Part shown: positions 13,434 through 63,156 of the stretch, one piece after another
Layout: every line of letters starts with the position of its first letter
Position numbering within the stretch: position 1 is the first letter of the stretch
NCBI GenBank assembly: GCA_004431415.1
Contig: QPMI01000081.1
Coordinates: forward strand, 22,346 to 86,345
Direction: 5' to 3'
Length of the DNA: 64,000 nt
Source of the DNA: Cyanophora paradoxa CCMP329
Lineage: Eukaryota; Plantae; Glaucophyta
Translations under genes and position numbers: made by a program
The notes under the pieces: model-generated
What the model was told of the DNA's origin: nothing
Seen by the model: only the letters and a program-made list of their open reading frames with translations
The model's database searches: none

Positions 13434-16400
13434 GCAGGTAGTTCATTCTAAATTCGTTTTTAATCGATATCTGCGGCGCCCGAGCCGCCACATATATTTC
13501 GCGGCGCTCGACCCGCCATTTTCGCGAAATGTCAGATTGTCGGATCACGCTGAAATCATATGCATGATCCAATGATCAGCGGCACGCAGCAGCAGCAACA
13601 GCCGCCTCCAACGCGGCCGCCGGGCACACATAAAGAAAAACAGCCTTCAGATTGTCCGGCGGCGTACGTTTTGGAGCAGGCGTGGCCTCGCCCGCCCCGC
13701 GCGAAAATGTTCCTATATATATTTCGCGCCAACGGCAGCGGGCATCGTCAAGCGATTCCTCGGTAGCGAATCAGCTCGCCGAGCTCAAGGACCTCTTTGT
13801 TCCGAATTCAGCTGGCTCGAATCATTGAATCCCCGGAGTCAGCTGGCCTTGGCACAAATTAAAATGCCAGGTAGCAAGGAATCAAGGGCGGGACTGCCGA
13901 CTTAGTGTTTTTTTGCAAAAGTGGACGTCGCATTGATCATGATACATCACGGCACATGTATCAATGTTCTACGTGAGGTGCCCTCTCGACCGGTCATGGG
14001 TCGCTCAATATGGGCGGGACTGCCGACTTTAGCTTGGCAATGTTCTCTAGCTAGATTTGTTGTGATTACTTTTTGAATATAAAAAGGCCATATGTAATTA
14101 TAATGCCAGCCACAGCCATTACCCTTCGTAGTCGTACCCCTTTATGCCCAGTAATGCCTGCCAAAGTAATGCCTGCCTACCCTTTGTAATCGTACCCCTG
14201 TATACCCACGATCTTGTACCCTACGACCTGAGCAATCATGATCAGCGACGGGATGACGACGTCGGCATCCCACGGCCGGGCTCGGCGCCGGCGACCCGCG
14301 AAATGCATGGGCAGGGCCTCCTTGCGTTCCCGGGCGATCGCGCATCTCCCGATAACCAGAATGCCGCGATCGACATCGGGTCCTCCGCCAATGAGTGCCG
14401 CGACCCTAACTGCAAATGTAAGCTCGCAAGCTCGTCATCGGGTGAAGTGCGCGCTTTTCTCCCGGCGCGGGCCCCCGGGGTCCACCAGACCATTATCGGA
14501 TATTATTGCAACCTGACGACGCTGCGCAGCCGCGATGCCCGGATTGGCAACGGCCATGCCACGGCTATGCTGCGCCGGCGCCTCACGGGCCGGCGCCCGC
14601 CGCCACGCCGACCCGGGGTCCCGTGCCGCCGCCAGTTCCGACGCCGGGCCCCGCGCCCCACCCGTTCGCCGCTCCCTCGCCCGCAACAGCCCCCGCTGCA
14701 ATCGCGGAGTGGATCTATGGTCAGTGGCATAGATCTCCTCTCATGACTAGGTCCAGCTTGGCGCCCGCCGGGGGGTCCGCCCCGCCCCACGCCCCGCACC
14801 ATGGCCAGCTGCATGCCTGCCCCCCTCGGGCCCGCGCCCCACCCGATGTCCGCTCTTCCCACCGCCGGCGCGGCCGCGCCTTACCCGGTGCCTGTGGCCG
14901 CCTCCACTGCAATCGCACAGTTGCCCCAGTGGTCTTCTAGCCCTGTGCCTCTCGGGTCTTCAGCTGCCCCGGCGCCGGCCTGGGGTCCCGCGGCCGCCCC
15001 GCGGGCGCCACCCGTCCCGCCCCATGGCCAGGCCCGCGGCCGCCCATTCGAACTCAATGCAGCTCCGGCGGCGAGCTTCGCAACTGCGCAACACCAGCTC
15101 CGAGGGCTCGCCGCTCTTCCCTCGAGCTCTACGCCGTACACGGCGCCCTCTTCGTCTTCGGATCCTGCGCCTCTCGGATCCGGACCTGCCCCGCGCGGGG
15201 GGCCGCGGCCGGCGCCGGCTGCGGGTTTCGTCCTGTCTCCTGGCCCCGCCCCGCCTCTCGCCGCTCGGAGCCCAGTGCATATGTAAGCGGCCCCCCAAGG
15301 GTATCATGATCGGAGCCCTTATAGCTGGCTTCCCCGATCTTTTCCCGGACTCGTGGTCGTACCCGTCGCCGCCGACTCGCCGGCTTGCCGAGCCTGCGTC
15401 TCCTTCTACTTCCCTCCGGCGGTTTGCCTCCGGCCTTTGTTCTTGATACCGGACTGCCGCCTTTGCCTTCGTCTTCTGCTTCGCTAGCGCTGGTCGTATC
15501 CCGCCGGCGCCGGCGTATACGTACTTCGTCTTATAGTTTAGTTCGGTCTGGTTCGGATTCTGATCGTAGTGTTGATGATAGAGTTAGTTTCAATACTAGC
15601 TATAGTCCTCGTGCTCGACCTGTTGTTCGCCGTCGTTTGCAGTTCGACTGCCCGCCTCGACCCCGGCCGGCTTTAGTGATTCCTTTGACTGTCCTTTTGC
15701 CTGCTCTTGATCCGCCTGCCGCAGTGCTCCGCCTCCTGTGTCCTCCTCGACCTCGTGCCGTAGCTCTGCCCGGGGATGGATTTGTCATTCAGCACCACAT
15801 TACAGTTTACAGAAACTGTCTCACCACGACGCCTACCATGAATCCTAGGATTGGCACTGAGGCACTTACATCTTTGGAAAATAGGAACCGAAGCTTTGAG
15901 TGCTGGAGGAAGCAGGTAGTTCATTCTAAATTCGTTTTTAATCGATATCTGCGGCGCCCGAGCCGCCACATATATTTCGCGGCGCTCGACCCGCCATTTT
16001 CGCGAAATGTCAGATTGTCGGATCACGCTGAAATCATATGCATGATCCAATGATCAGCGGCACGCAGCAGCAGCAACAGCCGCCTCCAACGCGGCCGCCG
16101 GGCACACATAAAGAAAAACAGCCTTCAGATTGTCCGGCGGCGTACGTTTTGGAGCAGGCGTGGCCTCGCCCGCCCCGCGCGAAAATGTTCCTATATATAT
16201 TTCGCGCCAACGGCAGCGGGCATCGTCAAGCGATTCCTCGGTAGCGAATCAGCTCGCCGAGCTCAAGGACCTCTTTGTTCCGAATTCAGCTGGCTCGAAT
16301 CATTGAATCCCCGGAGTCAGCTGGCCTTGGCACAAATTAAAATGCCAGGTAGCAAGGAATCAAGGGCGGGACTGCCGACTTAGTGTTTTTTTGCAAAAGT

Positions 16401-19400
16401 GGACGTCGCATTGATCATGATACATCACGGCACATGTATCAATGTTCTACGTGAGGTGCCCTCTCGACCGGTCATGGGTCGCTCAATATGGGCGGGACTG
16501 CCGACTTTAGCTTGGCAATGTTCTCTAGCTAGATTTGTTGTGATTACTTTTTGAATATAAAAAGGCCATATGTAATTATAATGCCAGCCACAGCCATTAC
16601 CCTTCGTAGTCGTACCCCTTTATGCCCAGTAATGCCTGCCAAAGTAATGCCTGCCTACCCTTTGTAATCGTACCCCTGTATACCCACGATCTTGTACCCT
16701 ACGACCTGAGCAATCATGATCAGCGACGGGATGACGACGTCGGCATCCCACGGCCGGGCTCGGCGCCGGCGACCCGCGAAATGCATGGGCAGGGCCTCCT
16801 TGCGTTCCCGGGCGATCGCGCATCTCCCGATAACCAGAATGCCGCGATCGACATCGGGTCCTCCGCCAATGAGTGCCGCGACCCTAACTGCAAATGTAAG
16901 CTCGCAAGCTCGTCATCGGGTGAAGTGCGCGCTTTTCTCCCGGCGCGGGCCCCCGGGTCCACCAGACCATTATCGGATATTATTGCAACCTGACGACGCT
17001 GCGCAGCCGCGATGCCCGGATTGGCAACGGCCATGCCACGGCTATGCTGCGCCGGCGCCTCACGGGCCGGCGCCCGCCGCCACGCCGACCCGGGGTCCCG
17101 TGCCGCCGCCAGTTCCGACGCCGGGCCCCGCGCCCCACCCGTTCGCCGCTCCCTCGCCCGCAACAGCCCCCGCTGCAATCGCGGAGTGGATCTATGGTCA
17201 GTGGCATAGATCTCCTCTCATGACTAGGTCCAGCTTGGCGCCCGCCGGGGGGTCCGCCCCGCCCCACGCCCCGCACCATGGCCAGCTGCATGCCTGCCCC
17301 CCCTCGGGCCCCGCGCCCCACCCGATGTCCGCTCTTCCCACCGCCGGCGCGGCCGCGCCTTACCCGGTGCCTGTGGCCGCCTCCACTGCAATCGCACAGT
17401 TGCCCCAGTGGTCTTCTAGCCCTGTGCCTCTCGGTCTTCAGCTGCCCCGGCGCCGGCCTGGGGTCCCGCGGCCGCCCGCGGGCGCCACCCGTCCCGCCCA
17501 TGGCCAGGCCCGCGGCCGCCCATTCGAACTCAATGCAGCTCCGGCGGCGAGCTTCGCAACTGCGCAACACCAGCTCCGAGGGCTCGCCGCTCTTCCCTCG
17601 AGCTCTACGCCGTACACGGCGCCCTCTTCGTCTTCGGATCCTGCGCCTCTCGGATCCGGACCTGCCCGCGCGGGGGCCGCGGCCGGCGCCGGCTGCGGGT
17701 TTCGTCCTGTCTCCTGGCCCGCCCCGCCTCTCGCCGCTCGGAGCCCAGTGCATATGTAAGCGGCCCCCAAGGGTATCATGATCGGAGCCCTTATAGCTGG
17801 CTTCCCCGATCTTTCCCGGACTCGTGGTCGTACCCGTCGCCGCCGACTCGCCGGCTTGCCGAGCCTGCGTCTCCTTCTACTTCCCTCCGGCGGTTTGCCT
17901 CCGGCCTTTGTTCTTGATACCGGACTGCCGCCTTTGCCTTCGTCTTCTGCTTCGCTAGCGCTGGTCGTATCCCGCCGGCGCCGGCGTATACGTACTTCGT
18001 CTTATAGTTTAGTTCGGTCTGGTTCGGATTCTGATCGTAGTGTTGATGATAGAGTTAGTTTCAATACTAGCTATAGTCCTCGTGCTCGACCTGTTGTTCG
18101 CCGTCGTTTGCAGTTCGACTGCCCGCCTCGACCCGGCCGGCTTTAGTGATTCCTTTGACTGTCCTTTTGCCTGCTCTTGATCCGCCTGCCGCAGTGCTCC
18201 GCCTCCTGTGTCCTCCTCGACCTCGTGCCGTAGCTCTGCCCGGGATGGATTTGTCATTCAGCACCACATTACAGTTTACAGAAACTGTCTCACCACGACG
18301 CCTACCATGAATCCTAGGATTGGCACTGAGGCACTTACATCTTTGGAAAATAGGAACCGAAGCTTTGAGTGCTGGAGGAAGCAGGTAGTTCATTCTAAAT
18401 TCGTTTTTAATCGATATCTGCGGCGCCCGAGCCGCCACATATATTTCGCGGCGCTCGACCCGCCATTTTCGCGAAATGTCAGATTGTCGGATCACGCTGA
18501 AATCATATGCATGATCCAATGATCAGCGGCACGCAGCAGCAGCAACAGCCGCCTCCAACGCGGCCGCCGGGCACACATAAAGAAAAACAGCCTTCAGATT
18601 GTCCGGCGGCGTACGTTTTGGAGCAGGCGTGGCCTCGCCCGCCCCGCGCGAAAATGTTCCTATATATATTTCGCGCCAACGGCAGCGGGCATCGTCAAGC
18701 GATTCCTCGGTAGCGAATCAGCTCGCCGAGCTCAAGGACCTCTTTGTTCCGAATTCAGCTGGCTCGAATCATTGAATCCCCGGAGTCAGCTGGCCTTGGC
18801 ACAAATTAAAATGCCAGGTAGCAAGGAATCAAGGGCGGGACTGCCGACTTAGTGTTTTTTTGCAAAAGTGGACGTCGCATTGATCATGATACATCACGGC
18901 ACATGTATCAATGTTCTACGTGAGGTGCCCTCTCGACCGGTCATGGGTCGCTCAATATGGGCGGGACTGCCGACTTTAGCTTGGCAATGTTCTCTAGCTA
19001 GATTTGTTGTGATTACTTTTTGAATATAAAAAGGCCATATGTAATTATAATGCCAGCCACAGCCATTACCCTTCGTAGTCGTACCCCTTTATGCCCAGTA
19101 ATGCCTGCCAAAGTAATGCCTGCCTACCCTTTGTAATCGTACCCCTGTATACCCACGATCTTGTACCCTACGACCTGAGCAATCATGATCAGCGACGGGA
19201 TGACGACGTCGGCATCCCACGGCCGGGCTCGGCGCCGGCGACCCGCGAAATGCATGGGCAGGGCCTCCTTGCGTTCCCGGGCGATCGCGCATCTCCCGAT
19301 AACCAGAATGCCGCGATCGACATCGGGTCCTCCGCCAATGAGTGCCGCGACCCTAACTGCAAATGTAAGCTCGCAAGCTCGTCATCGGGTGAAGTGCGCG

Positions 19401-20271
19401 CTTTTCTCCCGGCGCGGGCCCCCGGGTCCACCAGACCATTATCGGATATTATTGCAACCTGACGACGCTGCGCAGCCGCGATGCCCGGATTGGCAACGGC
19501 CATGCCACGGCTATGCTGCGCCGGCGCCTCACGGGCCGGCGCCCGCCGCCACGCCGACCCGGGGTCCCGTGCCGCCGCCAGTTCCGACGCCGGGCCCCGC
19601 GCCCCACCCGTTCGCCGCTCCCTCGCCCGCAACAGCCCCCGCTGCAATCGCGGAGTGGATCTATGGTCAGTGGCATAGATCTCCTCTCATGACTAGGTCC
19701 AGCTTGGCGCCCGCCGGGGGGTCCGCCCCGCCCCACGCCCCGCACCATGGCCAGCTGCATGCCTGCCCCCCCTCGGGCCCCGCGCCCCACCCGATGTCCG
19801 CTCTTCCCACCGCCGGCGCGGCCGCGCCTTACCCGGTGCCTGTGGCCGCCTCCACTGCAATCGCACAGTTGCCCCAGTGGTCTTCTAGCCCTGTGCCTCT
19901 CGGGTCTTCAGCTGCCCCGGCGCCGGCCTGGGGTCCCGCGGCCGCCCCGCGGGCGCCACCCGTCCCGCCCCATGGCCAGGCCCGCGGCCGCCCATTCGAA
20001 CTCAATGCAGCTCCGGCGGCGAGCTTCGCAACTGCGCAACACCAGCTCCGAGGGCTCGCCGCTCTTCCCTCGAGCTCTACGCCGTACACGGCGCCCTCTT
20101 CGTCTTCGGATCCTGCGCCTCTCGGATCCGGACCTGCCCCGCGCGGGGGGCCGCGGCCGGCGCCGGCTGCGGGTTTCGTCCTGTCTCCTGGCCCCGCCCC
20201 GCCTCTCGCCGCTCGGAGCCCAGTGCATATGTAAGCGGCCCCCCAAGGGTATCATGATCGGAGCCCTTATA
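13434..20271. repeat. Near-identical tandem array A-B-A-B-A (A about 1.89 kb, B about 0.59 kb; periods 2478 and 2469 bp)
   Basis: GCAGGTAGTTCATTCTAAATTCG starts at 13434, 15912 and 18381; identical ORFs at 13560, 16038 and 18507. A ends GAGCCCTTATA at 15323 in copy 1 and 20271 in copy 3. Confidence 0.95.
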
Positions 20272-20630
20272 ATTACTATCATGATCAAGGGTATGATCAT
20301 GACAGGCCTCCGTACGCGCACAGGGTGGTACATGTACAGCCGGAGCAGCAGCCGCCACGCGAGCCAGCCGGTGTTATCGGAGCAGCTGCAGCAGCAATTG
20401 CAAGTGGGACTGCAAGCAGCTGCAGCGAGAATTGCTCATATATGCATGGTTTCTTTAGTGGGCGGCTCTTTGCGATGAGCAAGGAGATCGCGGCGCAGCG
20501 AGAGGAATTCGCGGCGCAGTTCGCGGCGCAGCGAGAGGAAATCGCTGCGGCGAGAGCGGAGATCGCGCGCCTCGGCAGGGAGCTGTACGAGGAGGAAGCG
20601 AGCTCGAGTGAGCTGGCGAGCGATCACTAG
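19250..20630 (+). CDS. Pro/Ala-rich protein with a short C-terminal coiled coil; complete only in the third A copy; start uncertain
   Basis: Pro-rich exons, then intron gtaagc (20231)...gacag, then PPYAHRVVHVQPEQ...SKEIAAQREEFAAQFAAQREEIAAARAEIARLGRELYEEEASSSELASDH-TAG. The stop codon comes from the CACTA end. Confidence 0.5.
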
Positions 20631-23600
20631 TAAAAGGGGGGTCGCCGGAGCCTGTTTCAGCCTGATTAATATCAGGCTAGCCTGATTCGAAAACAGGCTG
20701 GAATCAGGCTGAGCCGCCAGCCTGAATCCAGCCTGATTGCCAAACAGGCTAGCCTGATTAGCTATCAGGCTAGCCTGGTTTCTTTACAGGCTGGACTCCA
20801 GCCTGCACCCAAGCCTAATTCGAATAGTTATCAGGCTGGAGTCGGCTGGTCAGGCTGAATCAGGCTGAGCGCGCCAGCACACATAGAAGCATCGGAACTC
20901 GCACTCTTAATATGATAAGCACTAGTACTAGTACTACGTATACGGTACTGTTCTACATCTAAACATGCAGACGGAATTGAAAAGCGGCAAAAAGGCAGTG
21001 GTTCTCCAGGAGATATTGCGGATCCGGGCCCGCGCTCCTCGCAGGCCGCGGCGCCGGACGCCGCGCTCGGCATGTGGATGTGCCGTGCGGTGTCGCGCAC
21101 GGGGAGCCGCGCGGAGCTGCCCGCGGCCGCCGCCGGGCCGAGACGCCCGTCCTAGGAGATAATGTCAGAATAAGGTCAGACGATGGGTGTTCGGATGGGG
21201 GCGATCTGAAGGCGCGCAGCAGCGCGTATTGAAGAGTTATTTAAGATCATGTATAAAGCTTAAGAGCGGCGCCGTGGCCTGGCAAGCGCGCACCAAAAAA
21301 GCGCGGCACTCCGCTGCAGCTTCGCGTGGAGAGCTCGCCAGGGAAATCTGGACAAGCAGAACTCGAGGTTAGATGCAGACTAGTGCGCGAGGAAAGAGAA
21401 CGCGCCCGCGGCAGCGATTCCCGTGGCCCAGCGGCCCGGCAACTGTGCCAGGAAGTCGTCTCTAAAAGTGATCTGCCGGACCGGATACTATGCTCCATTA
21501 ACTCGTATTGAAGCCCTTTATAAGCCTACGTGGTCGGCCGAAAGTTGATTCTCCCCCCACTAAGGTCTCCGCGGACCTGGGCGAGCTCGGCGACGGGATG
21601 GTCGTACTGGCAAGGAAGCCGCCGGCTCCCGCGCGGCCATTTCGCGAGCATCTGAGGCGAGGATTACGGCAATGCGCAGCGATTGGGGCGGGGGCGCACG
21701 GGTGCGGCCGCGCGGCCATGAAACTGCGGCGGAGGTCGGCGCTCGGGCGCGGTGCGGCAGCGGGCGCGGCTCGCCTGCAATGGGATCGACCGAAGATCAG
21801 TTGTAGCGCGTTCCGCATGCTCGCTGCAGCCAGGCGCTCTCGAGGCTGCAAGGAATCTGCACGACACCGGCAGGCCTGCACGGAATCGCGTCGGGTCATG
21901 CTGAGAGCATGCAAGTGGCATTCTTACATCGACGCAAGATCCCTGTGATGTAGAGCGGAGAGCTGCGCCGAACCTGGGCCCAAATGAGCAACTTCTCCCG
22001 AGGTCGGCGCAGCTGGAGAGCGGCGTTGGGAGCTCGCAGGGACCGATCCAGCGCACCAAGCATCCCACGTAGCTCTCGGGACGCTGCTGGGCGCGAACGG
22101 CCTGCCGCGATGCAGCACTAGATGGGCGACGTCGCCTGCAGCGTCTGTGGAGCTCTCAACCCGTTATAGCTAGCGCCTCCAGTGCATAGATGCGCTCGCC
22201 GCTTGTCTTGCATGCCTCTAGCTAAGAGCGAGGTCTTCGAGCTTGGGTACCAGTTTTGACTGGGGTACACAAACCGCAAATATCGGAGCCCTCGCTGCCC
22301 GCTCCCGCGCCTTGCGGCAGCCGCGGGCGAGCGGAGCGTGCAGCAACCGCCTCTATAGCGTTGCTTGCACCTCGTACGCGTGCAGGTCGGCAGCGAGAGC
22401 GGGCCGCGGGCGGACTTCTTCGAATGAGGTCTGCGGCCCGTCTCCCGCGAGCTGCCGGCCTCTTGGCACACTCGTTGCTGATCATGCAGCGCTAGGAAGC
22501 GGGCAGCTTCCGCCCGGAGCCCCGAACGGCATTGTCCGCAGCCCGCCAGGTCCGATCCGCGAACTCGTGCTCTCGGACGCGCTGCGGTCGCTCTGTGGGC
22601 TATTCTTGCTAATCGTCTCACGCAGGAGTGCTTGACCGGCCTGCGCTCTCGCTTCCGTGGTGACCCGCGGCCGCGACTGCACGACCCGCGCTTCTCGCTT
22701 CCTGCAGCTGCAGGCTGCAGCACGGCGCGGCCGCTCCTCCCGGCCGGCCACTCGCCGGCGCCCAATTCCGGCCGAGGCCCGCTCGCCCTTGCTGACTCGC
22801 GGTTCCAGATCTTTGCCTGCTTCGAGGCGTGCCGCCCCGCGCGACTTCGCCTCGCGATCCTCGATGAAGGTACGCGCTCCTCCCGGCCGGCCGCTCGCCG
22901 GCGCCCGATCCCGGCCGAGGCCCGCTCGCCCTTGCTGACTTGCGGTTCCAGATCTTTGCCTGCTTCGAGGCGTGCAGCCCCGCGCGACTTCGCCTCGCGA
23001 TCCTCGATGAAGGTACGCGCTCCTCCCGGCCGGCCGCTCGCCGGCGCCCGATCCCGGCCGAGGCCCGCTCGCCCTTGCTGACTCGCGGTTCCAGATCTTT
23101 GCCTGCTTCGAGGCGTGCAGCCCCGCGCGACTTCGCCTCGCGATCCTCGATGAAGGTACGCGCTCCTCCCGGCCGGCCGCTCGCCGGCGCCCGATCCCGG
23201 CCGAGGCCCGCTCGCCCTTGCTGACTCGCGGCCCCAGATCTCGCATGCGGGCGACTGGCAGCACAAGCTGCGACGTTCGATGTGGATGCGCATTGGCGAC
23301 CGCCGCCCTCCAGCGCTCCCTTGCTCCCCCGGCGCTACGGGCAGCGCGACGAGGCTAATTGTAATGTCTGGTTTAGTTTCAGTTATTGAATGTTTAGTGC
23401 GTTTAGATGTAGAACAGCGCTTCTCGTATGTGCAATTCGAGTTCGGATGCTTCTACGTGTGCTGGCGCGGTGCTGGGGGCGGGGCGGGGGGTAGCAAGCC
23501 TGATATGAGCCTGATGTTCAAGCCTGTTTGAAGCCTGATTCAAGCCTCATTCAGCCTGATCCAAGCCTGATTCAAGCCTGTTTCAGCCTGTTTCAAATCA

Positions 23601-49910: not shown

Positions 49911-51092
49911 TCACTTCGCGCCCGCCAGACTGCCGGAGCTCCGATATTTCTCGAGCTCCTGCTGACAGGCTGAATATTGCACTTGCAGCTGGTTCAACTC
50001 CCGTTGAAGTCGCTTGCTACAGACGGCAGTGTTGTGCGAGCCGCTCTTGCATTCATCGCACCAACGAGGCTGTCCGCCGCCCTGACTTGAAATTAACTTC
50101 AGCTTCTTGCTGTCGGGCTCCTCGATCGCGACGTCGTCCTCCTCGAGGCGATGACGATCAGGGAAGGCGGAAAGTTGAGCAACAGGAGCTCTTGCCGCTG
50201 CAGTAGAAAATTGATTGTCGGTCCTTGCTTGCTGCAATCGACTCTCGAGCGCGTTGCGCGACCGAACTCGACTGAAGAATTCGCGACTCCACTCCGCCAG
50301 ATTATTTCTGGAGCCCTCCGGAATTTTACTCGTGAGCTTGATCATTGACGGTGAAGTGATCGAATCCGACGACATTATTTCCGCGATCAACATCTCGTCG
50401 GAGAACGAATCCTGAAGCTGCAGTAGACGACGAAGAATAACAACATTATTTATAAAAGCTTGCGCATCCAGCTCAGATGGATTTTCCAGCGCAGAGAAGC
50501 GACGTCCCGCCGTCTTGATAGTATTCTTCAGAAGCTCGAATTTGTTGCCAGGTACCAAGCCGAGCAGTTGCTCACGAATTTGGGCCCACGACGTCATGTC
50601 CAAGTCGCCGTTGCCCGACTTCGTAGTCATGGCTCCCAGCACAGCCGTAGAGAAGGATCCATGCACAGGGTCACTTAAGCTTGCCGAGCGTTGCAGCGAA
50701 GACAGTGCAAGCTCTGCCAACGTCTTGTCGGGGTCTGTGTATGTCGGAGGCCGGACACAAATTGTTAAACGTTCCAGCGACTCGACCCACGACAGTACAC
50801 CCGTATTAGTCAAAGGAGGAATTTTCTCCTTGAATTCTCGCAGCTCGTGGTGACGTGCTTGCATGTCCAGGTTGCCAGTTAACGCGTCCAGTGCGTTCTT
50901 CAACGTGTTCTCGACTGCAGCAGCGGCTACCGCTGCCGGGGCCGCAACAGGCGCCGGAGCTGGTACCGGTGGTGCAACTGGAGCCGGAGGCGGAGCTGGC
51001 GCAGGTGCAGGAGCAGGCACTTGCACTCCATGGCCAGCCGCCCCGTGGCCGCCGCGTTGGCCGCCGCCCCTGCCCCGTGTACTCGGAGCCAT
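49911..51092 (-). CDS. gag: Gag-like protein, 393 aa, intronless, with CCHC zinc knuckle
   Basis: CDECKSGSHNTAVC matches CX2CX4HX4C; capsid-like VLSWVESLE and SWAQIREQLL; lower GC than host genes; lies between LTR sequences. Confidence 0.85.
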   Translation of the reverse strand: MAPSTRGRGGGQRGGHGAAGHGVQVPAPAPAPAPPPAPVAPPVPAPAPVAAPAAVAAAAVENTLKNALDALTGNLDMQARHHELREFKEKIPPLTNTGVLSWVESLERLTICVRPPTYTDPDKTLAELALSSLQRSASLSDPVHGSFSTAVLGAMTTKSGNGDLDMTSWAQIREQLLGLVPGNKFELLKNTIKTAGRRFSALENPSELDAQAFINNVVILRRLLQLQDSFSDEMLIAEIMSSDSITSPSMIKLTSKIPEGSRNNLAEWSREFFSRVRSRNALESRLQQARTDNQFSTAAARAPVAQLSAFPDRHRLEEDDVAIEEPDSKKLKLISSQGGGQPRWCDECKSGSHNTAVCSKRLQRELNQLQVQYSACQQELEKYRSSGSLAGAK

Positions 51093-52096
51093 GGAGAACT
51101 TGAGCTAGACACGTCCGCCCGCCGCTCGATACCGCGCGCCGTGGTACTAGTGTAGGCCCGCGCGCCCCTCGACTCCGAATAGTTTATTCAGACGTCGACT
51201 CGTGTGCCCGTTCAGTCGCAGACGAGGCTTGAGAGTTGCGAGTTCACTTGCGACAGCACTAGCTCCACTAGTACAGAAGCTTAAGTGCGCTCGGCCTCGC
51301 AGCGAAGCGCCGGCTGCTCTTGCCGAGAGCCGCTCACGGTCGACCGCGCCGCGCGCAGCCTCCCCGCCGGTGCGCCGCCGCGCGCGCGCCGCGACACGCC
51401 CAGCGCGCCGCGACCCCGGCCCCGATAGCGCGCCCGCCGATGCGCCGCGCGCCCGCGACCGGCGCGCACGCGCTCGCAGGCTCGAGCTCCCGGCCGCAGG
51501 TCCGCCGGCGCGCAGCCGGGATGCCGGCGCGCGCCCTGGTTCCGGATCCGGCGCTCCGGATCCGGCCCGCGGCGCTCCGCGGATCCGGGTCTCGCGCGAG
51601 GTGCAGCGCCGCGCCGCGCCGACCGTCGGACGAGCCGCCGATCTACAGCCCGGTCTGCAGTGCAGACGCTGCGACGAGCGAGCGGCGATCAGCCCTGCGA
51701 CGCGCGCGAGGCGCCTAGATCTAGAGCCCCGGAGCTAGCCCGGCTAGCCGCGACGTCGACGTCGTCGCTAGTGGCGCCCGGCGGCCGGCATGCGCGCGCA
51801 CGCGCCGCGCGCGCTATAGCTAGCGACGCCGGGTCCGGAGCCCAGCGCTAGCCCCAGTCGCGACCCAGGACGGATTGCAAAGGGATGTATACGCATCTTT
51901 AAGCAACGCGTAGGCGCGATGGCGCTGGCGGCAGCGTCCGCTCACCCGCGATAGGTTGCGCCGAGCGGGAAGGGGTTGGACGAATGCGCGAAACGGTTCT
52001 GGTCAGCGCACGGCGACTTCTGAAGGCACAGCGACTATGCGCATGAAATGAACGCGAGGCGAAGCTCGCTCGGCTAGCTCGCAGAGCCAGCGTTCG

Positions 52097-52535
52097 TGTC
52101 GCGGGCGAAATCTTAGGCGGCTGCAGCCTTAGAGAATTTGCCGTTCGTAGAGACCCGGGTTCAATTCCGGCAGTTCGCTTCGGCGTACTTAGAGACTCGG
52201 GTTCGAATCCAGCGGCTCGCTTTTCATATGTCTGAGCCGTCTGACCGGATCATATGATCTGATCATGAGAGCTTCGGACGACAGCGTGAGGGCTTCAAGA
52301 GCCCGGCGCGTGCGTGTTGAGAGGGATTTTGCCATTCCCGGAGATCGGCCTAGTAGAGAGACTAGAGTAGTGAAACTCTGTCGGATCAAATCTACGAGTA
52401 CTGTCATACTGCTGAACCTGCATCACGCTGGGGCCGGTCTTGCACTCACTGCAGGTCAGAGTCACTCTATAAACCTGTTGTCTAGAATCCCGTGCCACCC
52501 CTAGGGCACCGGAATGGGGGATTTCTAGCTCAACA
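52097..52535 (+). repeat. Inverted LTR copy, 439 bp, TGTCGCG...CTCAACA
   Basis: Reverse complement of 47517-47955. Confidence 0.95.
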
Positions 52536-52538
52536 ACT

Positions 52539-52557
52539 TGGGGGCTGCTGCGGGAAT
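52539..52557 (+). promoter_or_regulatory. tRNA primer-binding site, tRNA-Pro-like
   Basis: TGGGGGCTGCTGCGGGAAT starts 3 nt after the LTR terminal CA and parses as the complement of CCA, discriminator C, a 7-nt acceptor stem, a 5-nt T stem and the T loop; resembles the TGGGGGCT start of Pro PBSs. Confidence 0.8.
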
Positions 52558-52856
52558 GGCAAAATCCCTCTCAACACGCACGCGCCGGGCTCTTGAAGCC
52601 CTCACGCTGTCGTCCGAAGCTCTCATGATCAGATCATATGATCCGGTCAGACGGCTCAGACATATGAAAAGCGAGCCGCTGGATTCGAACCCGAGTCTCT
52701 AAGTACGCCGAAGCGAACTGCCGGAATTGAACCCGGGTCTCTACGAACGGCAAATTCTCTAAGGCTGCAGCCGCCTAAGATTTCGCCCGCGACATTCGTC
52801 GCAGCAGAGAAAAGCCGTCCTCGGCGCCTGCTACCCCGCCCGCGACAAGCTATAGT

Positions 52857-54610: not shown

Positions 54611-57600
54611 ATGGTTTTGGGCTTTCTGCGGCGCGGCCGAGCTCGAGGAGCCAAGCACGGGCACGGCGAACCGGCCGAAAACAAGCTCAAAGATGAGCAC
54701 GAGGCGCCGTTCGGCCTGGAGCTCAACCCGCTCTTCACGAGCGGAGATGCATATGCGCCGCATGCGCAGCTGCAGCTCGGCTTCTCGACGAGCGAGCTTC
54801 TGCGAGTCCGAAGCGTGCAGCATCAGCAGATTGAGTCGTCGGGTCACCTCGCGCACTTGTACGCGCTCCTGTCCATGGCCAGCTGCAGCGATGTCGACGA
54901 GCAGCGCCTCCCCGCCTTCGTCGAGGAAGAGTACGCCGGCGACGTGCAGGCGGCACTGTCGGATCTCCGCCGTCTGTGCACTGGGAGTGCGCGTGCTCTT
55001 TACACGCATCGGTGCTCTTCGAAGCGCTGACAACCCCTGCAGTGGTGAACACGCTCAAGCAGAAGGCCGTGCTCGATCATGGAGACCTCGCCGAAGCGAG
55101 CGCTCTTATCCACACCGGCGACCGCGAGCTGTGCCGCTCGGTGCGCCTGCGCTCGCGTCCGCGGCCGCGGCCGGTGGCATGGGAGTCTTCGTACGCCGCG
55201 CCATGGCCAGAGCCTGACGGCGGCGCACGAGCAGATGGTGAGCGTACTTCTTGAGAAGGCCCGGTCAGCAGCGCTGGTCAAGACGGACGTGCTCTGCGCG
55301 CTGGCCTGGACGCTCGGCCGCTTGCCGAAAGGTACACTTGGTTCAGCAGACTTCGACGTCCTCGTCGAGTTCTGCATGGGTCACGTACGTATACGCCTCC
55401 GGGATCCGAGCCGCACCGTCGCACCGCGCGGCTGATGCTCTAAGCTCGCAGCTGGAGCAGTTGCGTCGCGCCGACGTGGGGGAGGGTACGTCGCTCGCGC
55501 GGCTCGAGCTGGTGGCCGCAGCCTTCGATGCCCTGGACGGGGACAGGGGGCCAGGTCCGCCCCCGCCGCGGCTTCCACGTGCACGTGCATGGTCCTTTCT
55601 AATTTGATCGCACGGGCAGCCGAATCCACGTGGGCGCTGAGCTTCGACAAGCGTGTGCGGCCCGTAACCGAGCTCCTGGAAGAGGCGCTGTCAAGGTCGA
55701 CCAAGCACGGCGCCACGCACTGGCGCGCAGAGGCCGCCGCGCTCGCGGCCCTACAGGCACGCCTCCGACCCCGCTGTCGCGCGCCCGCTGATGAAACGTC
55801 CGCCGCGCGCCCTCCCAGGCAGTGGCACACGCCAAGTCCGACTTCGACCGGTTCGGCGACGTGGTTCGGCGCGCAGCGGCCGCAGGTGCGCTTTCTAGCT
55901 CGGTGCGCCTGGTTCGGGGGTTTCGGCTTGACTCGTGGTGCGCAGGGCGCGTGCTGCAGAGGCTGTACAGTGCGGGCCGCGTGGTTCTGCAGGGCGTGGC
56001 GAGCTTCGGCGCGACTGCCATCGTCGACCTGCTCCTCTTGGCCAGGGCCCGTGCCGCGCCGCGCGGCCGTCCCACCCCCGGTCCGAGACTCGCGAGCGCT
56101 CACTTCTCGTGCAGGAGTACGCGACGGGAGACGCGACGGCGGCTCTTCGCGAGATGTGGAGCGATGTAAAGGCTGTGGCGGCGAAGGACGGACCGCGAAA
56201 GACAGCGCCGTGGTCCGATTCCTTCATGGCCGCGCCGCTCTTCAAGATCATGATCTGACGCACCGGCACGGGCGTCGCAGGTACGCGCAGGCGAGGCTGC
56301 TCGCGGCGCTGGCGGCGGGCGGCGGGCTCGGCGAGATGAGCTCGCTCCTCGCCGACGACAGCGGCTCTGGCATCCTTCAGCAAGCTGCCGCCAGCAGGCC
56401 GATCGCTCTCGCCCTCGCGGCGGCGCTCGTGCGGGTGCGAGCATACAGCGAAAGCGTTCAGTGGCCCCGTCTAATAATGCTCCATCAGATCGTGGAGTGC
56501 AGCTCGTGGGAGCAAGGGACGCCCGGCATCAATGGCGAGGTCGCCGTCGGGTGGCTCCTCGATCTGGCCCGCGGCGCGGCCGCGCTGACCGAGCGCCGCG
56601 GCGAGGGCGCGCTCTCGGTCGCTGTTGCGGCGCTGGCGACGGTGGCGGGCACGGAGGGGGTCGACGCGGCCGCGTCCGCGGCGCTGGCGTCGCTGCGTCT
56701 GCTGTCGAAGCTCGGCGGGGCGGGGGCGGACGCGGTGCACGCGGCGGCGCTGCGGATCCTGGGCTCGGCGCCGCCGAGCTGCTGCAGCGGCCGCCCGCGC
56801 GGCGGTTCCCGGTCGCCCTGCCCCGGCTTTCTTCGGCGGCCGGCGCTCGCGGTGCGGGCGCCGAGCTGCTGCGCGCCGCCAAGGCCCTCGCATGGCCCCC
56901 GCCGGACCCGCTCTGCACGGTGCGTCTCGCTACGCTCCAGCCGCGCCTTCGATTATCATGCTCACGCCCCCCGCAGTACGCGCAGTCGGAGGTGGCCTCT
57001 ACACGCGACGCGCTGTCGCTCTACGTGCCGCCGCGCGCGACGACGGACCCCTCGCAGCGGGAGGTCGTCGACCTGTTGGAGTACACCGCCGGCTTCATCC
57101 GCCGAACGGCCGGGGACCCGGGGGGCCATGGCCAGCCGCCGGCGGGCCAGTCGGTGCTGCTCATCACGGGCGACCCCGGCAGCAGCAAGTCGACCTTCCT
57201 CAAGTTCCTGCACCGCGAGGCGTGCCGCCAGCTGCAGCGCCAGGCACAGGCGTGCGCGGGCTCGCCCTTGCCGGCGGTCGCGACGGTCTGCGTGCGCCTG
57301 GCGAGCCTCGGCAGCGGCGGCGCTTGCGGCGGCCTGCGGCGCGTCGTGGCAGAGCAGCTCGGCCTCTCCCCCGTCGAGCTGCCTTTCGTCAGGGACAGGT
57401 CAGACCAGACCTTTCCGTGCTTTCCACCGCCACCGTATGCCTCAGCAGCTCATGGACTCCTGCACAGGCGGGGTCTCGTGCTCCTTCTCGACGCGTACGA
57501 CGAGCTCGATGCAGACGTCAATCTTTGGATCGCAAACGAATTAGAGAAGTGGGCGTCAGCCGCTGTCATTACTTGCAGGTCAACTTACGTCGCTTCAAAG

Positions 57601-60600
57601 TTCAAGCGCTCGCAGGTGCGTGCCGTGTCGGCGGCACGCGGCACCGCTACCCTGCGCGCAATATTCAATGGCTGACTTTATAGTTTGCGGCGCTGCAGGA
57701 AATATTCGCGCCCGACCCAGTCAACGCCAGGCGGCTGGCGGAAGTTCGCATGCACTTGTTCGGTCCCGAACAGGTGTGCGGCTTCATTTTCGCATCCAAA
57801 TGAATATCCGAAGCAGACCGGGTGACCATGTGCAGGTTGCCGAGTACCTGGAGCAGTACGTCCGCCTGCACGGCAGCGAGACCGGCTGCGGGTGGACTGC
57901 GCAGGACTACCAGCGCCACATCGCCGCCACGCCGGGCGTCTCCCAGCTCGTCGAGAACCCTTTCACGCTGAGGCGAGCTCGCGGCCGGCTCCTGCCGGTT
58001 TCGCCCGCGGCCGCGGCCGGGCTCTCGTCTTTTGATTCCGATCCGCAGCCTCGTGGCGCGCTTGCTGCCCGCTGTCGTTGAAGAGCGCGAGCGGTTCGGC
58101 CACCCGCGCCACCGCACTTGTCCATTCTCGCCACTGACTGACGAGGACCGTGGCCAAAAGCGGCAAAGGCGGTCAGGCCGCGGATCTGTTGACATCGGTC
58201 GAACTCTACCGGCGCTTTGTCGACGATTGGCTTCGGTCGCAGTGGACGAAGAAGATCAGCAGCTCCGCCGGCGGGGCCCGATCCCGGCCCGACGCAGCCG
58301 GTGCGAATCCGCGTGCGCGTATCCGTGCACCCCGCCCCCCTCCTCCATCGCTGACGGAGCTTGGCAGCGAGTTGGGAATCGGAAGATTTCGTCGAATGGG
58401 CCAAGGATCTGTGCCGTGAGCTCGCCGTCAACATGTACCGGGCGCGCCCCGCCCCGACACCGCTTAAGCATCCAGTGGCTGACTGCTTTCGCAGGCGGGC
58501 ATCTCAGAAGTGGTGTACGGCGCCCCGAGGAGGGCGCCGCGTCGCGGAGAGCAGGCGCCCGCGGCCGTCGCTGCTCCGCCCACGGGGCACGTCGGTCGCT
58601 GCGTGGAGCTGATCGAGGGCAGCAAGGACAGCCTGGACAAGTTCGTGGCGGACTCGTGCGGGCTGCTCGTGCTGTCGCGCGGCGCCGGCGACGGCGACGG
58701 AACGAAGCACGTCCGCTTCCTTCACAAGGCGCGCCTTTCGAAGCTCCCCCGTCTCTCTCTCTCTCTCTGTCTCTCTTCGCCGGCCCTTACGTCCAAGGCA
58801 GACACTGATGGAGTTCTTCGTTGTCGATGACGATTACAGCGCGTTCGTGAGGGTGCGATCGATGGCTCGAATATCTGAAATTCCAAGAGTTGAGAGCGAT
58901 CGCGAGTAACGGGACCGTGCAGGCGCTGCGCGCGACTTCTGGCCTTGTAGAGCTGGATATCTCGAGCTCCTTCCGCGCATCGCGCCGTGGATCGCTGTCC
59001 GTGTCCTCGGGCGCCGACGCCAGGGAAGCAGACTCGGCTGCGGACGACCTTCTTAGCGTGAAGTGCGGGCTGCGCGGGCGCGGCGCGCTCCGCCGCGCCG
59101 CATGCACGTCTGAAAGTCTCCTCCAGGCTTCTGACCTCCGAGCCCAAGATCCTTCACTTCTTGGCCGAGCAGTGTGCCGCGGACTTAGAATTTCGCCAGG
59201 CACGCGCCGTGCGCGCCACGTCTGTACGTGGCGTTAACTGACGGTGGGCGGGCGGGCGCAGCGGCTGCTGCGGCTGGTCGAGGCGAGCCGCACGGACGGA
59301 TCCGTCGTCGCGGCCGCCAACGCGCTGACCATCTTGAACTATGGTGCGCTTGGGCGAACTGCGCAGCAGGACGTGCGGGAGCCAACGCGCGCGCATACGC
59401 AGCGGGCCAGAGCTTCGCTGGCTGCGATTTGCGCGGGATTCGCGTGCCTGGGGCTGGTCTGCAGCGGGTGGAGGCGGCGGGGGCAGATCTGCGCGGGGCG
59501 GACCTCACCGGTTGCAACCTGGACCGGGCGAATCTCGCCGGCACGGACTTGCGCGGGACAACGTTGAGCGGCTGCGACGTCGCCGCGAACCCCGCGCTGC
59601 TGGGACACGAGGGGGACGTCGTCTCAGTGGCCATCACAGCCGTGCGCACCAAGTGTTGTACACGCCCCCTTAAGATACTAGAGCGAGTGGGCGTGCAGTG
59701 GCCGGGCGCTAGAGAGCACCAGGCGGAGCGCAGCGGGCAGACCAAATACTTGGGCTAAACTCTAGATGAGATCAAATCTAATGCCGACTGCAACTATAAG
59801 CAGCTCGAAGACTGCAGCTATTTGCTAGGCTAATAAGTGGCCATCGCCGCCGTGCGCACCGCTTCGCGATCGCCCTCTTGCTCTGTGTCGCACTGATCAT
59901 GAAGCGCTGCAGGATGGCCGGCGGGCCGTCTCCTGCGGCGGGGACCGGGCGCTGAGGGTCTGGGACCTGGAGCTCGGGTCCGAGGTGGCGCGTCTCCCGC
60001 AGAGCAAAGCCGAAGAGAAGTGGGAAGTGAGCCCGTTCTCCGCAGTCGCTGTCACCGCGGTGAGTGCGCGGCCGCCTTGTGTTTAATTTCCATCGCGGTT
60101 GGATGCGGCGCTGACTTGGCGGGGCAGGACGGCGCGCTCGCCGTGTCTGGCAGTTGGGACATGACGGTTCGGGCGTGGGACCTCCGGAGCAACGCAGAGA
60201 TCCACCGGCTGCTCGGCCACGAAGGCCCCATAAACTGCGTCGCCGTCACGCCGGTTCGCTGCACCGTGTGTACGGATTGACGATCGGCCGTGTCGGTTGT
60301 GCTAACAAAGAAGCGTATTCGCCCCAGAACGGTGGCTTCGCTCTGACGGGGAGCGACGACGAGACCGTGCGACTGTGGGACCTGGCGACAGGGATCGAGA
60401 AGCAGCGCCTGCGAGGGCACGAGGACAAAGTCACTTCCGTGGCCATCACTGCGGTGCGCGAACGATGCTTGCGTAATTTATAAATGCGCATCGATTGATG
60501 CTGATATGAGTCTGGCGCACGGGGTTCGCGATCGAAGGACGGCAAGTTCGCTGTGACCGGAAGCGAGGACCAGACAGTCAGGGTGTGGGATCTTGAGCAG

Positions 60601-63012
60601 GGGAAGGAGACGCTGAGCCTGCGAGGCCACACCCGCGGCATCACTTCCGTTTCCGTTACAGCGGTGAATTCTTTGAGGGGGGGCTCTGATTACACTATTG
60701 CAAATTTCTGATCCACTCATTTGCTCTTGGCATTCAGGACGGGACGCGCGCCGCGTCCGGCAGCCGTGACAAAACGCTGCGCGTCTGGGACTTGAAGAAG
60801 GGCTCTGAGCTAATGATTTTGAAGGGTCACGAGGGCGCCGTCCTTTCCGTGTCGATCACCGCTGTGCGCGACTTCGTGACGCTGCTTTCCCTTTAATTCG
60901 CTGCTCGAGCTCTTCCTGATTCCTCGACGCGCACGTGCAGGACGGCAGGCGCTGCGTGTCGGGCAGCGCGGACCGCACGGTGCGCTGGTGGGACGTGGAC
61001 AAGGGCGGCGAGCTGCGGCAGCTGCAGGGGCACGAGGAGCGGGTCCTCTCCGTCGCAGTGACTCCGGTGGGCCGCGCCCAAGCTTAAGCTTCAGCTGCAG
61101 GCGGACATGTACACCGGTACCGCGCTAACTCGCGAGGTGCTTTACTTCGCAGGATGGGCGGAGGGCTGTCTCGGGAGGGTACGACAGGGCCGTCCTAATG
61201 TGGGACCTGGACGCATGCGGCGGAGCCGGCGGCGAACCCCTCCGGGCGCCCGGCCACGACGACTGCGTCAACGCCGTAGCCCTCGCGCAGGCGAGCAAGT
61301 CGGGCGCGATCGCTCCATCTACTTCGTGTCACGCCTTTGAGCTTGCACGCAGGACGGGAGGCGGGCCGTCTCCGGCGGGAGGGACAGGGCGCTCTGCGTG
61401 TGGGACGTGGAACGCGGCTCCCAGCTCCTTCGCCTGAAGGGCCACGACGACTGGGTCTTCTCCGTCGCCCTCACGGTGGTGCGGGGGACGGCGGCGACGG
61501 ATGGGACCGGCTAGCTAACTCTCCGCATCGCTCACGCACGCTCTCAGGATGGCAGGCGCGCCGTGTCTGGCGGGCGAGACAAGGCCGTCCGGCTGTGGGA
61601 CCTAGAGACTGGCGCCGAACTTCTCACTCTTAAAGGGCACGAGCACTGGATCGATGCCGTTGCCGTAACGGACGTGCGCGCTTCGCGACCGCCGCGGCCG
61701 GCGCCGCACCGCTGGCGCCGCAAGGCAAGCGGCGAAGCTCACACGAAATCGATGGCAGGATGGCAAGCGCGCCGTCTCGGGCAGCAGGGACAAATCGATT
61801 CGGATCTGGGATCTGGAGCGCGGGCTCGAGCTGCGGTCTCTTCTCGGGCACGAGAGCACCGTCAACTCGGTAGCCATCGCGAGGGTCAGTCGGCTTGATT
61901 CGAATCCGGCCGCGGGATCCGGCCGTGCCGCTTGCGCTGTTTGCCAATTAATATTTCGGCTCGCGCGCGCGCACGCAGGACGGGAGGCGGTGCGTGTCCG
62001 GGAGCTGGGACAGGACCGTGGCTCTCTGGGACCTGGAGAAGGGCGCCCGGCTGCTCTGCCTCCAAGGACACACGCGCGGCGTCAAATCCGTGGCGATATC
62101 CGCGGTGCGCAAGACGTTGCGCAGGCTGCGGATCGAAGCCGCTGACAAAGGATCAGGATGGGAGGCTGGCCGTGTCCGGAAGCATCGACAAGACCGTGCG
62201 CGTGTGGGATCTGGAGAGGGGCGCCGAGCTGCACACCCTGGAAGGGCACGGCGAGACCGTCTTTGCCGTCGCGTTGACTGCGGTGCGCGCTCCATGTTGA
62301 CTGTGTCTGACAATAGATCTCTGCGCTCCTCGCGCGCCCTCTCACTGAAAAAGAAAATGCACGCACGCGTCTCCGCAGGACGGGAAGAAAATCATCTCCG
62401 GCAGCCGGGACAGGACCGTGCGCGTCTGGGACTCGGAGACGGGTGCCGAGCTCAACGTGCTGAGAGGCCACGACGCACCTGTTGTCGCGCTGGGCGTCAC
62501 GCCGGTGTGTTTAATATGGCTGGACAGATCTAGAGCCGATACGCATCTGAGCGCGTCTCTTATTTCGATGCAGGACGGGCGGCGCGCGGTGTCTGGGAGC
62601 TGGGACAAAACTCTACGAGTGCACGACTTCGAAGCCCCGCCCAGCGATGCGCCAGCGCCGGCCTCGCGCGCGCCGCACGGGGCCATCTGCCCGCGCCGGA
62701 TGGCCCACACCGAAGCCATCCGCTTCGAGGCGACTGGGGCCAAGGCGCGCGCCCCGCCTTCGATTTCGAATTCGCCCGCCCGAGTGCAAGCTCTGACGCG
62801 TACGATGACGCCGCCCCTTGCGCACGCAGTTCGACTCGACGACGTCTCTGTCGCCGCTGCTGGCGGTCTTGCTGAGGCAGCTCGGCGCGACGTCGGTGGA
62901 GACATGTACATCGGAGGCGACCATAGCAGCGGGGTCGGCGGCGCCTGTCTGTAGCCAGATACGAACGTACGACTGGTGCTCTTGGCGAGAGTCTCGAACT
63001 CGAAGCTCGTGA
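54611..63012 (+). CDS. NLR-like STAND protein: helical N-terminus, NACHT NTPase, pentapeptide repeats, 14 WD40 repeats
   Basis: Walker A LLITGDPGSSKSTF, Walker B LVLLLDAYDEL, AVITCRSTY, VENPFTL and VRFLHK; AANALTILNY followed by pentapeptides (ADLRGADLTGCNLDRANLAGTDLRG); GH...WD repeats at 59600-62630; tail LSPLLAVLLRQLGA. Start codon inferred. Confidence 0.9.
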
Positions 63013-63156
63013 GATCGATTATCATAGTATAAATTTTTTGTTGTGATTCAATGATTGTACATGTGCGTCTAGCGCTGTGTGCTTAACTGTGATGTATCTC
63101 TCATAAATTCGAGTCATACGTATACGTATACTTTTCGTGCACATGAGTAATCCCGA

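Follow-up and report, generated by a model that had tools for sequence, protein, structure and literature searches.

A WD40 array with one intron per unit in an NLR-like gene of the glaucophyte Cyanophora paradoxa: probable origin from an old spread of exon cassettes

The Cyanophora paradoxa gene tig00000334_g24114 (g24114) encodes a helical–NACHT–pentapeptide–WD40 protein, and successive WD40 units of this protein are separated by 14 phase-0 introns at one shared codon. It is probably a fixed, constitutively spliced NLR-like STAND gene with a 7+7 WD40 sensor, whose array would derive from an old spread of exon cassettes. The gene lies in the stretch of 64,000 nucleotides analysed here (the window). 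In assembled RNA contigs at depth 4–8 it is spliced in order, and signs of recent repeat turnover are present in sister genes and absent from g24114.

Gene architecture and register of the WD40 exons

The hand model of the gene (Table 1) agrees with database protein P0001 except for one annotated 28-aa piece, omitted by the RNA contigs, which was dropped because three RNA runs join 59641 to 59913. The N-terminal domain, over which no RNA contig aligns, is common to at least nine paralogues (E 1e-38 to 1e-56), while Pfam gave no family above cut-off for it and the Atlas no match. In the following region the best Pfam match is NACHT (profile positions 2–165 of 167, E 1.5e-4), whose 22.1 bits lie below the cut-off of 26.7 that is passed by paralogue P0021 and Mortierella P0023. 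The region aligns with both proteins (E 4e-48 and 6e-33, respectively), and these alignments, the NACHT match and the WD40 array support the NLR-like NACHT–WD40 (STAND) architecture that an earlier note on this DNA had read from the sequence. The Walker A motif of g24114 is atypical; the variant is family-wide and retains the Lys and Ser/Thr. A C-terminal motif in the last coding exon is weakly common to P0009, P0018, P0002 and P0006 (phmmer E 3e-4 to 4e-3).

The 14 WD40 exon starts of the earlier note were recovered, each preceded by AG and opening on D/N-G, together with its lengths (126 nt in 11 exons, 147 nt in exon 1, 138 nt in exon 7) and phase 0 for all introns between WD40 exons. A 14th in-register intron, at 59642–59912 after the part-repeat 59597–59641, is additional to it. 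The random chance of 14 introns falling at one position of a 126-nt unit is about 5e-28. Non-repeat exons of the gene have a median of 132 nt, which makes 126 nt an ordinary size, and 14 of the 24 non-repeat introns are also in phase 0; therefore, the shared register alone is special. The description of one exon per WD40 module is correct as to register but not as to blade: each exon covers strands b–c–d of a blade together with strand a of the blade that follows, according to the structure model and known WD40 topology.

The predicted model of the WD40 region (pLDDT 85.7) matches double propellers and contains 14 units, in agreement with the double propeller (7+7) that had been proposed. Its top structural match is the highly repetitive double propeller PDB 2YMU (E 4e-56, TM 0.81, 35% identity over 574 columns), a likeness of structure only that has no bearing on genes or splicing. 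In the model, exon 7 lacks strand d and falls under pLDDT 50, and it is probably the crossover between the two propellers. Exons 1 and 7, with their own lengths, look position-specialised. Since the 14 units form 7+7, skipping an exon would disturb the propeller.

Table 1. Features of g24114 (positions in the window)
Feature	Position	Strand	Description	Evidence
Whole gene	54611..63012	+	39 exons, 1848 aa	Hand model
N-terminal domain	54611..56919	+	About 550 aa, Ala/Leu-rich, probably helical, 11 exons	
NACHT NTPase and helical region after it	56977..59343	+	Walker A GDPGSSKST, Walker B LLLDAYDE	RNA contigs cover part
Pentapeptide-repeat exon	59403..59641	+	Ends in first WD40 part-unit (GH to strand a)	PF00805 E 4e-16; RNA
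First WD40 part-unit	59597-59641	+	Inside pentapeptide exon	HMM match
First in-register intron	59642..59912	+	Phase 0, 271 nt	RNA joins 59641 to 59913
WD40 exon 1	59913..60059	+	147 nt, without GH	Exon analysis, RNA
WD40 exon 2	60128..60253	+	126 nt	Exon analysis, RNA
WD40 exon 3	60328..60453	+	126 nt	Exon analysis, RNA
WD40 exon 4	60538..60663	+	126 nt	Exon analysis, RNA
WD40 exon 5	60738..60863	+	126 nt	Exon analysis, RNA
WD40 exon 6	60941..61066	+	126 nt	Exon analysis, RNA
WD40 exon 7	61153..61290	+	138 nt, Gly-rich insert, GC donor	Exon analysis, RNA
WD40 exon 8	61353..61478	+	126 nt	Exon analysis, RNA
WD40 exon 9	61548..61673	+	126 nt	Exon analysis, RNA
WD40 exon 10	61759..61884	+	126 nt	Exon analysis, RNA
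WD40 exon 11	61979..62104	+	126 nt	Exon analysis, RNA
WD40 exon 12	62157..62282	+	126 nt	Exon analysis, RNA
WD40 exon 13	62379..62504	+	126 nt	Exon analysis, RNA
Exon 14	62574..62744	+	171 nt, final part-unit (strands b, c) and tail, GC donor	RNA, HMM
Last coding exon	62830..63012	+		RNA joint 62742/62828

Transcripts and divergence within the array

The RNA evidence consists of assembled contigs from two samples (four runs, depth 4–8), a form in which rare isoforms are dropped. Thirteen WD40 joints occur at the predicted places, 11 of them in all four runs or absent from single runs only. One contig has exons 2–14 in order, and the lengths of contigs X15 (1807 nt, exon 2 to the last exon) and X18 (1381 nt, exon 5 onward) fit the inclusion of every exon. 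The joint 58701/61685 is a false join, with one side of 22 nt and non-splice ends.

The earlier note had envisaged combinatorial exon use. It is improbable that a repertoire of propellers arises by alternative splicing, with phase-0 exons skipped or combined, perhaps under infection only. The 13 internal exons are all symmetric in phase 0 and could be skipped in frame, precedents exist in brown algal ROCO LRR exons and NLRP3 exon 5 (PMC11378527, PMC6642158), and low RNA depth and assembly into contigs conceal minor forms. However, the mRNA is seen in order only: no exon-skipping joint appears among the joints listed for the four runs (depth 4–8, with 11 joints outside that list), and contigs span 9–12 junctions unbroken. 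A skip would leave 13 units, yet 14 are kept in four of the five complete family members. There is no surplus cassette in the 64 kb, and the skip of NLRP3 exon 5 inactivates the protein and creates no new specificity (PMC6642158).

A search of both strands of the 64 kb with protein and DNA profiles recovered only 15 coding pieces and no spare or inverted WD40 exon. The introns are mutually unrelated (best score 24, against a shuffle maximum of 25), as the earlier note had cautioned. In intron 59642–59912, a 24-nt segment at 59838–59861 echoes the end of the exon with its donor, and a repeat fragment lies at 59753–59821. The WD40 units are 52% identical to one another, and their exons share 51–68% nucleotide identity, with a longest exact shared stretch of 15 nt. 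Identity at four-fold sites is 0.40, against 0.36 by chance, and dS is saturated, so that dN/dS is inestimable. The top self-identity over 100 aa is 62% in g24114 versus 83–92% in P0002, P0006, P0009 and P0020, which places g24114 below the level used for HET-E (at least 85% over 100 aa) and P0006, P0009 and P0020 (88–92%) above it. Units lying farther apart in the array are not clearly less similar (rho -0.17, p 0.09), and units seven places apart (i/i+7) resemble each other no more than the average pair, so that the array gives no evidence for doubling of a whole propeller. From these comparisons, the duplications look old and the copy fixed.

Little probability is therefore left, by the divergence just described, to the view that g24114 still diversifies in DNA, through unequal crossing-over or cassette exchange with paralogues, and varies between strains. 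The pattern is present in paralogues, where the units of P0006 and P0009 are intermixed, and the 24-nt duplication could be counted in its favour. On the other side, such strongly diverged exons, whose longest run of identical bases is 15, offer scant template for recombination, the nearest unit of other sampled genes is at most 74% identical, and 99% of words are found in fourteen DNA runs, perhaps all from one strain. The near-chance four-fold sites, the unrelated introns and the lack of a spare exon in 64 kb speak against ongoing shuffling at this gene. The ordinary WD40 gene built by ancient exon duplication, which the earlier note had set against its own proposal, largely describes g24114 but not the family.

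Paralogues, distant relatives and the origin of the array

The family is expanded (over 20 members), with TIR-family matches (PF13676) in several paralogues. Among five complete members, g24114, P0002, P0009 and P0018 have 14 units and P0006 has 17. The WD40 units of paralogues are 66–84% identical and cluster by gene or subfamily in the unit phylogeny (22 label changes versus 53 when shuffled), clearly so for P0002, P0020/P0013 and P0006/P0009, the last two intermixing. The units of g24114 are scattered on long branches (a single clade is not rejected, p-AU 0.30), none of them more than 74% identical to its closest unit from any other sampled gene. Gene-model inserts of P0013, P0018, P0019 and P0020 lie at the same unit boundary in the protein models, and those of P0020 are alike among themselves; paralogues thus appear to carry introns at the g24114 boundary.

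The codons under selection in HET-E (7, 9, 25 and 27; PMC1805685) correspond to unit positions 34, 36, 10 and 12, which are the most variable positions in the homogeneous paralogues. Relative to other non-core sites, variation at these four top-face sites is 2.2–6.5x in paralogues and 1.3x in g24114 (p 0.015, with a core set chosen after the data were seen). The variable top-face residues pointed out earlier therefore do sit at HET-E-equivalent sites, but their excess in g24114 is just 1.3x.

Mortierella P0023 has the same domain order (NACHT–pentapeptide–WD40) and aligns with g24114 at 26% identity over 98% of the NACHT–pentapeptide region. Unlike g24114, it has an intronless WD40 array and a canonical Walker A, and its ARM_5 domain has no detectable likeness to the g24114 N-terminus. 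Mortierella and three agaricomycete NACHT–WD40 genes have 0–1 intron inside the array, which suggests that the intron is a lineage-specific addition. Three metagenome contigs from another eukaryote have an intron at the same unit boundary, and its ends are 96% identical between units, which demonstrates duplication of cassettes in that organism. The junction pattern had no match in viral or prokaryote collections.

According to the old-cassette explanation, one phase-0 intron would have been gained in one WD40 unit of an ancestral family member. The exon-plus-intron cassette would then have spread through the array as nearly identical units recombined by unequal crossing-over and gene conversion, in the manner of the fungal HET-E/NWD genes. 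This turnover would be recent in several paralogues and long stopped in g24114, whose exons may have diverged afterwards in a position-specific manner. It is very improbable that the 14 introns were instead gained separately at a repeated proto-splice site of a pre-existing array. Unrelated introns, an intron-dense genome and a second eukaryote with an intron at the same boundary would be compatible with such gains, but the codon before the WD40 introns is mostly GCG/CCG, not AG. Furthermore, the 14 units have no intron away from the shared position, although elsewhere in the gene an intron comes about every 135 nt, and the near-identical metagenome intron ends also speak for cassettes.

With an intron in each unit, repeat exchanges can be dated and traced by intron sequence, which is impossible in the intronless fungal arrays. 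In this series g24114 is the old, frozen end and serves chiefly as a control, the younger paralogues being better targets. There is a slim chance that the Cyanophora family forms a splice-assisted repertoire of recombined cassettes, in which surplus-cassette genes (P0006, with 17) or g24114 under challenge splice subsets. This would give a single-celled alga different propeller surfaces, and the same boundary elsewhere would imply a shared system.

Putative receptor function and comparison with known systems

A receptor function is fairly likely for g24114. By analogy with Apaf-1 and HET-E, the propellers would keep the NACHT domain closed until a ligand at unit positions 10, 12, 34 and 36 frees it; nucleotide exchange would then lead to oligomerisation, and the N-terminal domain would signal. 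It is rather unlikely that g24114 is a STAND scaffold acting on an endogenous partner, of immune-like ancestry but not a non-self sensor. The frozen array, the weak top-face excess, the low and steady expression in culture, the atypical Walker A and the lack of a known effector domain would suit a scaffold, whereas the Walker A variant is shared by the family with its Lys and Ser/Thr kept, and the TIR matches and the size of the family argue for a receptor. A search of the literature, with few subscription journals, found nothing on NLR-like genes whose WD40 units each have an exon of their own, nor on the Cyanophora NACHT–WD40 family in a glaucophyte; it found no paper on the APAF1 extra repeat, and this parallel was kept out of the evidence.

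The fungal NWD/HNWD proteins (Podospora HET-D and HET-E; PMC1805685, PMC4986451) likewise combine NACHT with an array of 42-aa WD40 units, and their selected codons fall on the positions most variable in Cyanophora paralogues. However, g24114 differs in its internal conservation (62% versus 85%), its intron per unit, its pentapeptide repeats, the lack of a HET domain and its glaucophyte host. The exon-shuffling receptors of the Ectocarpus type also carry one sensor repeat per fixed-length phase-0 exon, their TPR exons encode 42 aa as the g24114 WD40 exons do, and both are candidate algal immune receptors. In contrast to them, g24114 forms a closed WD40 propeller instead of an open solenoid, has no spare, inactivated or inverted exons, and gave no sign of alternative splicing at depth 4–8. 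In a unicellular archaeplastid, the Cyanophora family appears to unite top-face diversification of the HET-E type and the arrangement of exon cassettes known from repeat genes of brown algae and ciliates.

Known LRR exon-array genes resemble the Cyanophora family in their one-phase, fixed-length exons from cassette duplication and in having young homogeneous genes beside old diverged ones, but their exons are in phase 2 and free in number (1–51), versus mostly 14 in Cyanophora. The LRR exons of vertebrate NLRs, as in NLRP3 (PMC6642158), make the sensor domain strictly exon-modular, as it is in g24114.

Exon and intron layout of the g24114 array

The NACHT–pentapeptide–WD40 gene g24114 was built by hand as 39 exons encoding 1848 aa (54611-63012), in which the introns upstream of 57080 and the intron 58094-58160 are predicted only. 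The N-terminal region, about 550 aa, is common to the paralogues and bears no family name, NACHT is the best Pfam match, slightly below cut-off, and the gene also carries pentapeptide repeats and 14 WD40 units. One predicted intron of 53 nt (56735-56787), very GC-rich, without a clear branch point and adjoining a short duplicated stretch, agrees with the public gene model.

The 14 WD40 exon starts listed in the earlier note were all exact, each preceded by AG and beginning with D/N-G. Its exon lengths (126 nt in 11 exons, 147 nt in exon 1 and 138 nt in exon 7) and its phase 0 for every WD40-exon intron were likewise recovered. These exons are separated by introns of 52-96 nt, with a GC donor at exon 7; GC donors occur in 8 of the 38 introns of the whole gene. 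Because an extra intron (59642-59912), preceded by a part-repeat closing the pentapeptide exon, adds to the array in the same register, 14 introns share one codon boundary, with a chance probability of about 5e-28. Exon size and phase alone are ordinary for g24114, with a median of 132 nt in non-repeat exons and phase 0 in 14/24 non-repeat introns. The exon-per-WD40 feature is real.

The double propeller proposed earlier is supported by the predicted WD40 structure (single-sequence model, pLDDT 85.7), which matches double propellers, best 2YMU (TM 0.81). One exon corresponds to strands b-c-d of a blade plus strand a of the following blade. Exon 7, at the array midpoint, has a Gly-rich insert with poor order in the model, which would fit a crossover between two propellers.

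The database protein P0001 (Cyanophora paradoxa tig00000334_g24114 in EukProt) is identical to the hand-built model residue for residue, but for 28 aa at the first repeat boundary. This piece, from intron portion 59829-59912, is included in the public models P0001 and P0014 and is spliced out in three RNA runs; it is probably a wrong annotation or a minor form. A 24-nt direct repeat of the exon end and donor (22/24 alike) flanks 186 nt of the same 271-nt intron. The arrangement resembles an insertion accompanied by a long duplication that left a second donor-like site behind.

Splicing and age of the array

The earlier note saw in the modules a candidate for diversification by splicing or shuffling. 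Assembled RNA contigs of depth 4-8, from which rare forms are dropped, were compared over 57080-63050; they come from four probable RNA runs that cover two samples and two studies. All 13 in-order joints were found at predicted GT-AG or GC-AG sites, and no exon skip appeared among the joints listed, a set that excludes 11 weaker ones. A 1807-nt contig spans everything from exon 2 through the final exon, and a 1381-nt contig starts at exon 5, their coordinates being consistent with inclusion of every exon. The full-length in-order form is thus the main one, although minor forms could exist, and diversification by exon skipping finds no support at this depth.

The array is also old. Its 126-nt exons share 51-68% DNA identity and 52% protein identity, with a longest common exact stretch of 15 nt, and their introns, as the earlier note cautioned, are mutually unrelated, aligning no better than shuffles. 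Identity at four-fold sites is 0.40, where chance would give 0.36; synonymous sites are saturated, so site-wise dN/dS is not estimable. Spare, broken or inverted exons are a hallmark of shuffling in Ectocarpus (PMC3341825), whereas no such WD40 exon turned up when both strands of the window were searched with profiles. Together with the near-chance four-fold sites, this argues against ongoing shuffling at g24114.

Paralogues and relatives

The searches recovered over 20 paralogues in Cyanophora. Within-gene unit identity is 66-84% in P0002, P0006 (g17934), P0009, P0018 and P0020, compared with 52% in g24114, and the fungal threshold for highly conserved repeats (85% identity over 100 aa) is reached in P0006, P0009 and P0020. 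In a tree built from 76 units over 42 columns, with many of its forks open, paralogue units cluster by gene or subfamily, those of P0006 and P0009 intermix, and those of g24114 sit on long branches. The HET-E codons under selection, 7, 9, 25 and 27 (PMC1805685), correspond to unit positions 34, 36, 10 and 12, given the 18-residue spacing of conserved sites. These positions are 2.2-6.5x as variable as other non-core positions in paralogues; the top-face variation claimed for g24114 is present, but reaches only 1.3x.

Exactly 14 units occur in g24114, P0002, P0009 and P0018. The retention of this number in separately homogenised arrays speaks for selection on a 7+7 fold, which argues against free exon skipping. 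P0020 is cut short at 11 units. P0006 has 17, one of them just 34 aa, versus 14 in relatives, and is the strongest candidate for carrying surplus cassettes. In four paralogue gene models, additional pieces of peptide fall at the same unit boundary, and those of P0020 resemble one another; judging from protein models, they may be read-through of homologous introns. Units 3 and 10 of P0002, seven apart, have an insert in common, and units 5 and 12 of P0018 pair on the tree (99/91), a hint that whole propellers were duplicated or converted. The g24114 exons 4 and 11 both have TRG after GH, and i/i+7 pairs in this gene are overall no closer. P0005, P0016 and P0017 have a divergent, non-homogeneous propeller-like domain after the pentapeptide repeats; sensor type varies on one chassis.

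The closest relative outside Cyanophora is a Mortierella NACHT–pentapeptide–WD40 protein, P0023 (26% identity, E 6e-33). Its WD40 array is intronless, and the arrays of three agaricomycete NACHT-WD40 genes hold no more than one intron each, in contrast to one per unit in g24114. The Walker A motif is GxxGxSKS/T, not GxxGxGKS/T, in g24114 and every motif-positive Cyanophora member (P0002-P0022), and canonical in P0023. A spliced 126-nt unit pattern, which itself selects for the g24114-type boundary, matched nothing in prokaryote or viral collections but hit three short metagenome contigs that share the boundary and have units 90-97% identical. Intron ends are 96% identical between units in two contigs. 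The introns of the contigs differ from those of g24114 in being long and rich in GT, so another eukaryote is the probable source. The contigs demonstrate that the boundary occurs elsewhere without indicating its frequency, and either shared descent or convergence could explain it.

Origin of the layout

The likeliest origin is a single intron gained by one unit of a HET-E-like array and then copied through that array by the recombination that keeps repeats of this kind homogeneous. The layout would be a by-product of DNA-level turnover, without need for a splicing role; turnover would be recent in several paralogues and have ended in g24114, the static copy of the family. Domain order and family expansion suggest a receptor function.

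Repeat-per-exon arrays have been described in Tetrahymena (PMC6564038) and vertebrate NLRs (PMC6642158), brown algae have them as g24114 does, and fungi have NACHT-WD40 receptors with variable top-face sites, as in the Cyanophora family. Each ingredient is thus known singly in other systems; the literature search found no report of the exon-per-repeat NACHT-WD40 combination for WD40, nor in glaucophytes. Elsewhere in the window, a gag-like ORF adjoins an LTR about 2 kb upstream of g24114, and large tandem duplications occur.

Features in the window and in JGI metagenome contigs
Feature	Location	Remark
Tandem duplications	14144-20478; 22118-23293	repeated unit near 22100-23300
Near-identical ORFs	14801; 16716; 19185	
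Gag-like ORF, 393 aa, with adjoining LTR	49911-51092 (-) and 52092-52847	CxxCxxxxHxxxxC knuckle
Walker A, g24114	57169-57195	
24-nt direct repeat	59628-59651; 59838-59861	
RNA-matched segment	59753-59821	matches RNA contigs that are abundant (depth 27-55) and derive from elsewhere
Near-identical 126-nt WD40 exons, metagenomes	L002:444-569; L003:248-373 and 849-974; L004:1638-1763	same boundary, homologous intron ends; in first L003 unit WD40 pattern fades before unit end (may be a decayed cassette)
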